Shown: piece after piece, positions 26,739 through 29,896 of the stretch
Layout: each line of letters begins with the position of its first letter
Numbering within the stretch: the stretch's first letter is position 1
Assembly: GCA_002104905.1 (NCBI GenBank)
Contig: MCFE01000052.1
Span: forward strand, 62,001 to 126,000
Length of the DNA: 64,000 nt
From: Basidiobolus meristosporus CBS 931.73
Taxonomy: Eukaryota > Fungi > Basidiobolomycota
Reading direction: 5' to 3'
The notes under the pieces: model-generated
Database searches by the model: none
What the model saw: the letters and a program-made list of their open reading frames with translations, nothing else
Told to the model about the DNA's origin: nothing
Program-made: the position numbers and the translations under genes

Positions 26739-27051
26739 ATTGTTATTAGGAGCTAGGTGAAATACTCGCTTCCTGGGGTTCTTTGATGCACCTGTAGTGA
26801 ACGCGCAGAATATGACACTATGTGTTCATTTGAAAACGCTCATTGTAACGCCAATTGGGAAGCGGTAAGGAGGTTGTCTCCTAAAGATGCGCGGAGACCT
26901 CCAACCAGTATAAATCTGATGTGGTCATTGACCATGCCCTTAAATTTAAATCAACGCTGAGACTGTCTCCTCCAAGGAGAAGCACCATCGCTTTGATTTT
27001 ATCCCCAGTATCCTTCCTGCCCGAAGCTCGCTCACTTATATGATAACCGAC

Positions 27052-29254
27052 ATGTCTTTTCCAGAGCTGGACGAGAAAAGGTACGGGCATCCTGCCGGTC
27101 TGGCTGTTTGCTGATTCACGGCTAATCACCGCGAAAAGTCTTCCAAATGTAGCACTCGTGGTTCGAGATATCACTCGTGCCAAGTCTATATCGCTAAGGC
27201 TGTATCCCGGCACGACGGTCAGGAAAGCCATAGAATTGGTGTGTAGCCTCTGAAATGCCCACCCCGCTTGCTAGCCTTCACTGACAGATTTTCTTAGTGT
27301 TGTGATAAATTTGAGTATTGGGAAGAATGGAACTACGGAATGTAATGGTTTGTTTACTACGCGCGTTTTCAGTTGACAGTGGAGTTAACTGATCTCCCAT
27401 TTAGCTATTCCCAGACGTTGAATAGCTGGCTCAATGATTGGTTTTCTGTCGAATCCTACCCGCCAGAGACAAGGGTGAGCTTTGTTATACATTTGTATCT
27501 ACGTTACAGTGTCTGATCTCCATCGAGTAGAAATCTTTGCTGCTGCTCACTAAGAAGCCAGATTACTTCGAGCTAATGGCCTCACGACTAGTAAGTTCGT
27601 TCCTAATTTACTTCAACAACAACGAACTTACATATCTATTCAGCCGGTGCTATCCAAGACGCCAGAGGACATCACCAAATTCGTTGCTTTCCGTCAGAGC
27701 TCATTCGCAAATCTATTCAACAAGACCTTCTCTGCTCTCAAAACTAAGATGCGCCCTGACTCTTTGTACCTAAGTATTTTGCTTTTTCGTCGAGACCACA
27801 CCGTTCTGCAAACAAGTAGCGGGGTTCTGCCCACAGTGGTCATTGCAGAAGACCTGAGCAAGACCTATACCGATCAAGAGTTCGATGAAAATAACGAAGG
27901 CTTTGCTTGGATTTTAAAATCGTCTATGGATTGGGAAGACGACACTGAGCAATTCACCTCCTTCTCGAACTCTCACCGCCAAGGAGGGAAGCTGGATCTA
28001 CGGGTGGCATTTTGTGAGGCGGTCACTACATTGACCAAACTCTTGAACCTGAAGAAGCTAGGATTTATCTATGACTATCCGGTCGAAATGGGTGTCACCA
28101 ACTCGAAATTTATCTTGGCATTTCAGTATGTTCCTGACAAGGAGCTCACCAACGTCGCCTCTGAGGCGTTAAAGAATGGAATACTTCGATGGAAATCCAT
28201 AGAGAGCTTGGAGCCTTCGGTCTATTCCCCTAGTTTTTCCATCCTCTCACAATGCTGGTCCATCTATAGCGCACGTAAAACCCAGTTGACGCCGGGGCTT
28301 TACGTAGGGCTCTATCATTTGCAATCAACACCCACTGGTCTTAATATTCTACTTTCCTCCGAGAGAAAACATCTCCTACCTATGGTTAAGATCCGAGATG
28401 ATTCCGAACTATCCGAGGAAGAGTGGGAATGGCTGAAATCCGGAAAGCAAAGGCCAGTTCAGGGGGAGGATATCCTCGAAGAGATCTGTTTGAACCTCCA
28501 GAGCTCTAAGGAATTTACCCACATGGACCACTTTAAATGGCTGTTCACCAGGAGCTTTCTAAGGCTACAGCAAATGACGCGTCTGTCACTATGTTCACAA
28601 GACATCTACGATGTCGAAACTATAGAAATTACCCTTCCCTCAACGAAGATGAATAACCGAGCTGCTTTTGTGCGAGCGAAAGATACATCCACAACTAGCG
28701 ATAAAGTACGCATGATACTCATAGTTAAACCTATGCAAATGCTTGATGAGAGCCTGATGTTTCGCGGGTTTGCATATCATCCCCGTCTAATCATGTACCC
28801 TTTCCGACTATTCGGTGCGCTTCATCACCACGTTCACGACCCTACTGTTTACGACCCGCTACGAAGGAACATACTACTACTACAGAGCACGATTCATAAA
28901 GCACAGAACGACCTCACCGCCTCGACAAAATCCATAAGCTTCAGTAACCAACAAGATACAACGAACACCCGTGACGTGATTAAGGTCCTGAAAGAGAAGA
29001 TCGAGGAGCTGAACGAGAAATGGAGCAGTACCTCCTGGGGGGTAAGAGTCCTAGATTGGGATAGAAACCGATCTTGGGAGAGTAAAATGGGGCATCAGAA
29101 TGGAACCCTTAACTTAATGCGCCGATCTAACTCTAATCCGCAACACTCCAAAGAAATGAAGATGCCTCGCGGCGCACATCTATCCAAGCCCAAAAGACCA
29201 ATGAGTCTTTGTCAGGCATCAGAGTACCCAATACCTAAACCGAACCTGGTATAA
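27052..29254 (+). CDS. Ubiquitin-like/RA-type domain + ANKFN1/WIDE AWAKE/Nmf9 conserved-core protein, 6 exons, ~637 aa
   Basis: join(27052..27080,27139..27238,27298..27341,27405..27474,27531..27590,27644..29254) is open, 1914 nt, with GT-AG introns of 53-63 nt. The exon 6 product carries ANKFN1-like blocks: FAWILKSSMDWED, LLNLKKLGFIY, LTPGLYVG, VKIRDDSELSEEEWEWL. Confidence 0.8.
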
Positions 29255-29479: not shown

Positions 29480-29896
29480 TTAAAACAGCAAAGCAACCCA
29501 ACCGCCAATCAAGCATAAACCACCCAAAGGAGTTACAGGGCCCAATGGACGGAATCTTTCTTTGTCGAGAACCAAGAGGTAGATACTACCAGAAAAGAAC
29601 GCGGTGCCCGCAATGAGCAAGGGGCCAGCAGCATTGGTCTTACGCCCGAGAGAGGCGGCTAACAAGACCGCTGAGTGGAAAAGCTGATAATGAGCAGCAG
29701 TTTCCCACATCTTCAATTTTTTGGGATCGTTGTCTACATGCTTGGCTAAACCATGAGCACCGAAAGCTCCCAAGGCTACTCCGGTGGCACCTAGTACAAA
29801 TCATGTCAAAACCAAGAAAGAAGCTACACGTGCGTGTGTGCGCGTAATACCTAGGAAACAGCCAGCCCGCCAAAGAAACTGCGAAGTAACTACCAT
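29480..29896 (-). CDS. DUF423/TMEM256-family membrane protein, 2 exons
   Basis: GATGVALGAFGAHGL, WETAAHYQLFHS, FSGSIYLLVL and GPVTPLGGLCLIGGW; one GT-AG intron after MVVTSQFLWRAGCFL. Confidence 0.92.

Follow-up and report, generated by a model that had tools for sequence, protein, structure and literature searches.

A Basidiobolus protein that is probably a fungal member of the ANKFN1/WAKE/Nmf9 core family, with an N-terminal ubiquitin-like head

How old is the conserved core of ANKFN1, and does it need the ankyrin repeats (ANK) and fibronectin type III (FN3) domain that accompany it in animals? ANKFN1, WAKE and Banderuola have genetically defined roles in sleep timing, vestibular function, asymmetric cell division and the targeting of channels and receptors. 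In published work the family counts as holozoan, apart from one odd fungal case that was perhaps acquired by transfer: Zhang et al. 2015 recorded it in animals, in choanoflagellates and filastereans (with CRIB, RA or neither) and in a single fungus, Mortierella verticillata, with possible horizontal transfer (PMC4488434), and Ross et al. 2021 keep the holozoan framing. The question is raised by a gene of Basidiobolus meristosporus CBS 931.73, at positions 27052–29254 of the forward strand of a 64,000-nucleotide stretch of DNA (the window; contig MCFE01000052.1, 62,001 to 126,000, assembly GCA_002104905.1). A first-pass annotation of this DNA had proposed that the gene encodes a fungal homologue of the ANKFN1/WAKE/Nmf9 core, preceded by an RA-like domain and lacking ANK and FN3. 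The spliced product is 637 residues long and is identical, letter for letter, to the deposited protein K493DRAFT_384950 (P0001), which is annotated as 'hypothetical' and without a Pfam domain. We conclude that it is very probably a fungal member of the ANKFN1/WAKE/Nmf9 core family that carries a ubiquitin-like head and has neither ANK nor FN3.

Homology to the animal proteins was found by sequence profile. A HMMER profile of nine Basidiobolus proteins, run against 1.84 billion representative proteins, gave 213 matches at E <= 1e-3 and 65 at E <= 1e-10 (E-values are for the whole library). At E 1e-15 to 1e-10 it matched proteins of Hydra, Clytia, a spider, flies and ants that are called ANKFN1 or Wake in NCBI or UniProt. 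The animal ANKFN1 matches cover profile positions ~110–445 and lie between the Ank/fn3 and C-terminal RA domains, as in one protein with Ank at residues 330–387, fn3 at 488–571, the core at 613–931 and RA at 1332–1414. In the fungal protein the conserved core spans aa ~125–450 (27713..28690, forward strand) and corresponds to the 'non-motif domains' of Zhang et al. 2015. The proposal that the large exon encodes the part of ANKFN1 outside ANK and FN3 was thus borne out.

A structure search led to the same family. The AlphaFold model made from an alignment of 82 sequences had a predicted local distance difference test (pLDDT) score of 84.2 and a predicted template modelling (pTM) score of 0.84, and was used throughout; an earlier run on nine Basidiobolus sequences gave a pLDDT of 34 and was discarded. 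When this model was compared by Foldseek with AlphaFold DB/Swiss-Prot, human, mouse and zebrafish ANKFN1 were the top three matches (E 5e-20 to 1.5e-18, probability 1.00, template modelling (TM) score 0.50–0.51 by query). Query residues 81–630 aligned with residues 349–898 of human ANKFN1, so the similarity runs through the C-terminal helical region, past the stretch detected by the profile. Searches of the AlphaFold Database (AFDB) clusters and the ESM Atlas agreed, giving ANKFN1 clusters at TM 0.56–0.57 over 404–424 residues. An AFDB cluster representative at rank 13, A0A060YFU7, is automatically named 'Mab-21-like HhH/H2TH-like domain-containing protein'; as a scan of 82 members against Pfam (E up to 1) gave no Mab-21, we set this aside as an unverified automatic name. 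Look-alikes proposed by a language model (RA, SIN1 and kindlin for the whole protein, MyTH4-FERM for the core alone) are treated as leads only, because their scores of 0.69–0.76 were within the range of shuffled sequences.

Which residues of the core have been kept? Twenty-two positions are conserved separately in fungi and in animals, and they are mostly aromatic or aliphatic, plus R221, K350, R352 and E361. In the 82-sequence alignment L156, P164, W198, W284, G319, L320, Y321 and P347 are at least 90% conserved. G319 is present in 100% of fungal and 100% of animal sequences, L320 in 97% and 100%, and Y321 in 100% and 97%, respectively. These three begin the peptide GLYVGLYH (aa 319–326, 28295..28318, forward strand), the counterpart of the animal signature GLYLGYLK, which keeps GLY and differs in its last four residues; in the model it lies in a buried beta strand (residues 319–330). 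GLYLGYLK is the most constrained peptide of animal ANKFN1, and an allele in which alanine replaces its first glycine does not complement nmf9 in mice (PMC4488434).

The first-pass annotation had paired fungal and animal sequences block by block. Only one of the six animal strings that it gave, FLWFTKLSCMWED, occurs verbatim among 218 database proteins and the others are approximate, but the true sequences, once aligned, agree with the pairing. The aligned blocks of fungal and animal sequence are GIYLASLLY..D.RVLVT...LP..E, FHWLMKVACTWED, LGxxDLGQLY, GLYLGYLK and LPHCKIRDN.HVS.EEW.WLK. Pairwise identity to the animal proteins is only 18–25%.

Beyond the core the protein continues into a C-terminal sheet and three long helices (aa 455–590, 28703..29110, forward strand; model helices at 501–531, 538–564 and 566–584), with a conserved motif, W..W.VRVL.WDR.R.W. 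This region (profile positions 460–620) is matched by profile in other fungi. It is followed by a basic, Ser/Pro-rich tail (aa 593–637, 29117..29251, forward strand), which is predicted to be disordered (pLDDT < 50) and shows little conservation among paralogues. The Basidiobolus protein therefore has in common with animal ANKFN1, Drosophila WAKE (Banderuola) and mouse Nmf9 the whole region after FN3, that is, the three 'non-motif domains' including the GLY(L/V)G strand, the KIRD..EEW block and the C-terminal helices. What it lacks, compared with them, is everything else. Pfam scans found no Ank family (E up to 1) in P0001 or its eight aligned paralogues, and no fn3 match in P0001 or its aligned paralogues, in line with the first-pass annotation; a beta-grasp domain and a linker stand before the core instead. 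The C-terminal RA domain, a feature of the ancestral animal form, is also absent from P0001, the C-terminus being helical and then disordered in the model.

The N-terminal head (aa 13–89, 27146..27554, forward strand, across exons 2–5) is a ubiquitin-like, FERM-F1/RA-like beta-grasp domain. It has the order beta-beta-alpha-beta-beta-(alpha)-beta, is modelled at pLDDT 91–96, and superposes on ubiquitin and on FERM F1 and RA structures. A profile of 23 fungal heads, compared with PDB sequences, matched kindlin-2 F0, moesin and merlin F1, and talin F1 at E 1e-3 to 0.1. Weak Pfam matches among these heads were to TUG-UBL1 in 12 (best E 4e-5), RA_2 in five, RA in four, RBD in two, UBL_AVO1 in two and Kindlin_2_N in one, all members of the ubiquitin clan, with best E-values of 0.0066 for RA, 0.018 for RA_2 and 0.022 for RBD. 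The SPN domain of SHANK3 is among the closest structural matches, at 21–22% identity. A beta-grasp fold of the RA or FERM-F0/F1 kind, as first suggested, was thus found by structure model, by structural matches and by weak sequence profile matches. 'RA / talin-F0-like' is a fair description of the head, but its membership of the RA family is not established by these profile matches. Compared with FERM F0/F1, RA, RBD and SPN domains (kindlin F0, talin F0/F1, moesin F1, SHANK3 SPN, SIN1 RBD and RalGDS RA), the head falls below all curated thresholds and is not followed by F2 and F3 lobes, and GTPase binding is putative.

Is the head the C-terminal RA domain of animals, moved to the other end of the protein? 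Permutation or independent acquisition had both been suggested. A jackhmmer search from the animal C-terminal RA domain recovered no fungal sequence, and hhalign of the fungal head against the animal ANKFN1 RA domain gave a probability of 63.6% over only 29 columns (beta2 to helix 1). We therefore consider permutation unsupported, and the simpler reading is that the head would have been gained independently of the animal RA domain. The head is kept in homologues from Glomeromycotina, Mortierellomycotina and Zoopagomycota, and is therefore an old feature of the fungal branch.

How widely is the family distributed in fungi? Counting this gene, B. meristosporus yielded five copies in a word-indexed search, compared with one copy in invertebrates, and B. 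ranarum yielded more; no further copy was found within the 64-kb window. The Basidiobolus copies are 39–46% identical to the gene, except for its B. ranarum orthologue at 80%, and no Pfam domain was found in any of them. The only additions from a second such search, with a deep alignment, were one B. ranarum paralogue and Haplosporangium. Outside Basidiobolus, the strongest matches (E 1e-102 to 1e-44) are 'hypothetical proteins' of Entrophospora, Rhizophagus, Geosiphon, Paraglomus, Acaulospora, Mortierella, Thamnocephalis and Piptocephalis. Further matches come from Actinomortierella, Calcarisporiella, Radiomyces, Racocetra and Haplosporangium, and from the aphelid Amoeboaphelidium, so that the homologues range over Zoopagomycota, Glomeromycotina, Mortierellomycotina, Mucoromycotina and an aphelid.

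In four Glomeromycotina proteins of 1400–2400 aa (P0016, P0019, P0020 and P0024) the head, core and C-terminal helices occupy the first ~850 residues, and another 600–1600 residues without a Pfam domain follow. The published Mortierella verticillata homologue shares with the Basidiobolus protein a fungal core without ANK or FN3, and the Mortierellaceae proteins P0014, P0037 and P0218 fall in the same fungal clade. It was described as core only (PMC4488434), whereas here Mortierella-type proteins match the head too (profile positions 40–211); judging by these matches, the 2015 description of the Mortierella protein missed the head.

From 306 columns of the core we made a quick maximum-likelihood tree of 81 sequences, P0096 having been dropped for low coverage. 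It is unrooted and has several long branches; taxonomy was read from the minority of rows that carry organism names, among which no choanoflagellate or filasterean sequence was identified. Animals form one clade, with 98% support in the Shimodaira–Hasegawa-like approximate likelihood-ratio test (SH-aLRT). On the opposite side are clades for Zoopagomycotina/Kickxellomycotina, Glomeromycotina, Mortierellomycotina, Mucoromycotina and Basidiobolus, with an aphelid group and two further groups outside these. All Basidiobolus copies form one clade (99% SH-aLRT), in which the gene and its B. ranarum orthologue branch first. The pattern fits vertical inheritance in early-diverging fungi, which would place the origin of the core no later than the opisthokont ancestor. 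The suggestion that the core is older than animals is upheld by this tree and by the spread of homologues across early-diverging fungi.

Two observations reach further. A protein of Diplonema papillatum named 'putative leucine-rich repeat protein' (P0077, 1763 aa) has an ANKFN1-type core at residues 642–943 (E ~1e-10, whole library), and with one relative, P0103, it forms a long branch adjoining the animals in the core tree; the Diplonema core may reflect an older origin, a transfer or an artefact. 'MHYT domain-containing' proteins of Dikarya match the fold of the core and C-terminal region (query aa ~128–622) in Foldseek, at E 2e-15 to 7e-15. The best of these has 439 aligned columns and a root-mean-square deviation of 5.7 A, and the Atlas gave TM 0.48 over 364 residues to a Basidiomycota cluster of which 98% is PF03707. 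No Dikarya MHYT protein was found among the named top 150 profile matches. The predicted fold which the core has in common with the cytoplasmic part of the MHYT proteins was compared by structure. These proteins have an N-terminal MHYT membrane domain where the Basidiobolus protein has the ubiquitin-like head. If the likeness is homology, Dikarya may have kept the core and joined it to a membrane sensor domain.

What might such a protein do? No catalytic-type set occurs among the 22 positions conserved in fungi and animals, and we therefore infer a binding or scaffold role and not that of an enzyme. We propose that its four parts, namely the beta-grasp head, a short linker, the core with its invariant buried GLY strand, and the C-terminal helices to ~aa 590, would together make a non-enzymatic scaffold near the cell cortex or membrane. 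The head would serve for recruitment or regulation, most likely through a GTPase of the Ras/Rap/Cdc42 type or through a different cortical partner, and the core would bind a conserved client. Basic residues are present in most fungal heads at R23, in the beta1-beta2 turn, and at R38, at the start of helix 1. RA and RBD domains touch Ras at these places, which makes a partner of the Ras/Rap/Cdc42 type plausible. A parallel may be drawn with fly Banderuola/WAKE, which binds Discs-large and is required for cortical polarity. It also increases the amount of the GABA-A receptor RDL at the membrane, and governs how channels and receptors are targeted there (PMC9210315, PMC5493435, PMC9076693). The step in which the head acts through a Ras-type GTPase is tentative, and we give it rather less than even credence.

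The identity of the protein is far more secure than its mechanism, as is seen when each is set against its rivals. Could the resemblance to ANKFN1 be due to chance or composition, the gene being a lineage-specific orphan? The low identity to the animal proteins and the lack of any Pfam model over the region would allow this, but it is refuted by E-values down to 1e-15 in a library of this size, by profile matches that fall consistently within the ANKFN1 architecture, by an independent structure search that ranks ANKFN1 first, and by the invariant GLY of a known functional signature; we attach almost no probability to it. More serious is horizontal transfer from a holozoan (choanoflagellate-like) donor, as considered by Zhang et al. 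2015 for Mortierella, in which case the gene would have no bearing on the opisthokont ancestor. Transfer was raised when only one fungal genome was known to have the gene (PMC4488434), and it gains something from the lack of an identified Dikarya protein among the named sequence matches and from the Diplonema protein, by which the family turns up in an unexpected lineage. Yet homologues occur in at least four fungal subphyla and an aphelid, and in the tree the fungal clades agree with taxonomy and lie outside the animal clade. In addition, the fungal homologues have in common a fungal-specific N-terminal head and C-terminal motif, the introns of the gene are ordinary fungal ones, and the core fold shared by the Dikarya MHYT proteins speaks for divergence rather than absence. 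Transfer is thus improbable, although a variant, in which there was one very old transfer into the fungal stem, may apply. We hold with good confidence that this is an intron-bearing gene of the expressed type, and that its product belongs to the ANKFN1/WAKE/Nmf9 core superfamily as a fungal member passed on by vertical descent.

For the head, the alternative is that the homology to ANKFN1 holds but the head does not bind a GTPase. It would then be structural, packing on the core like F1 in the FERM clover, or an interaction domain of the ubiquitin-receptor type, and 'small-GTPase effector' would be wrong for fungi. Several observations point this way or otherwise count against a GTPase-linked cortical scaffold. 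None of the Pfam RA, RA_2 or RBD models reaches its curated threshold among the 23 fungal heads, and P0001 itself matches none of them. The head resembles ubiquitin-like domains that do not bind GTPases (ubiquitin, UFM1, Rad23, FERM F1) as well as it does the Ras/Rap binders (RA/RBD/SPN). Foldseek against the PDB, VIA-align and a profile search of PDB sequences found no solved relative of the core, their matches all being to the head, which may mask a weak match to the core; 'scaffold' is accordingly a reading of the lack of conserved catalytic-type residues together with animal genetics. Fungi are not known to have Discs-large-type MAGUK polarity complexes like those of animals, so the client of the fly protein cannot simply be carried over. 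The splice junctions are predicted and expression is presumptive; the reads covering the locus are genomic. On the other side, in homologues from unicellular holozoans and invertebrates the core recurs together with CRIB or RA (PMC4488434). Two features of the head itself also tell against a non-GTPase role: the closeness of SHANK3 SPN, and the retention of R23 and R38 in most fungal members at what would be the Ras-contact places of RA and RBD domains. A head that does not bind a GTPase is a real possibility, though we would stop short of calling it probable.

The proposed GTPase-linked scaffold can be placed in a wider scheme. The Basidiobolus protein resembles the choanoflagellate and filasterean homologues (PMC4488434) in being modular, with the core joined to a small accessory module of GTPase-binding type; its module differs from their CRIB or RA in being N-terminal, neither CRIB nor a recognisable Pfam RA, and closest to ubiquitin-like domains of the FERM F0/F1 type. 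The core could be a modular signalling unit of ancient origin, working close to the membrane, that arose before animals and perhaps before opisthokonts (Diplonema). It would have been joined repeatedly to different inputs: CRIB or RA in unicellular holozoans, ANK-FN3(-RA) in animals, a FERM-F1/RA-like head in zygomycete fungi and aphelids, and MHYT in Dikarya, with the Basidiobolus head binding a GTP-loaded GTPase of the Ras/Rap/Cdc42 type. We regard this scheme, taken as a whole, as somewhat unlikely. If it were true, the 637-aa protein would be a minimal and genetically separable model for the client and activity of the core. The recurrence of the core with interchangeable small input modules (CRIB, RA, a ubiquitin-like head and possibly MHYT) gives a testable hypothesis on its role, and the fungal protein, being compact, lends itself to structure determination and interaction screens.

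How much of this is new? In its domain architecture the gene is a new variant within a family already known; it does not represent a new kind of system. The first-pass annotation had assumed more novelty than there is, since a core-only homologue from Mortierella verticillata was published in 2015 (PMC4488434) and the present protein was already in NCBI and UniProt as a hypothetical one. The range of the family is wider than published: its presence in several early-diverging fungal groups and an aphelid, the conserved head and the expansion in Basidiobolus are new as far as we searched. A complete core has been inherited across early-diverging fungi, and it keeps the invariant glycine whose change to alanine is a loss-of-function allele in mice. 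The core should therefore date at least to the opisthokont ancestor and work without ANK and FN3.

The gene model consists of six exons on the forward strand, with an in-frame coding sequence of 1914 nt after splicing. Exon 1 (27052..27080) has the ATG at 27052 and contains codons 1–9 and two bases. Exon 2 (27139..27238) encodes beta1, beta2 and the start of helix 1 of the ubiquitin-like domain, as seen from the splice and structure models. It is followed by exon 3 (27298..27341), exon 4 (27405..27474) and exon 5 (27531..27590), the last of which encodes the end of this domain and the PDYFEL linker. Exon 6 (27644..29254) encodes aa 102–637 and the stop codon, and contains a 535-aa open reading frame (ORF) at 27647–29254 whose best database match is K493DRAFT_384950, at 100% identity. 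The five introns, at 27081–27138, 27239–27297, 27342–27404, 27475–27530 and 27591–27643, measure 58, 59, 63, 56 and 53 nt, respectively; all are GT-AG and have CTRAY-like branch sites of the fungal type. The model, including the range of intron lengths and the N-terminal peptide, is exactly that given at first pass. The five small exons, which had been described there as missed, were already part of the public gene model.

Support for the splice model is indirect: it agrees exactly with the deposited one, and the predicted domain encoded by exons 2–5 is kept in other fungal phyla and folds with high pLDDT. A related metagenomic or transcriptomic contig (L001) has the head and core in a single uninterrupted ORF of 664 codons. 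A second in-frame ATG is present at 27040–27042, four codons upstream of the annotated start, and would add MITD.

Reads over the locus came from three runs of genomic DNA. Their depth is even across the gene, at ~205–285x, and their contigs pass through the introns without joints; the gene therefore belongs to the genome and is not a contaminant. In both deep genomic runs the contigs break at 27982–28011, within the coding exon, overlapping by 30 nt, and a minor contig of 37 nt is covered at a depth of ~8 compared with ~245, which suggests a low-frequency variant or a repeat-like word in the coding exon. Downstream, with no evident functional link to the gene, the convergent neighbour at 29480–29773 on the reverse strand encodes a small DUF423 (PF04241) membrane protein (E 1.8e-26).

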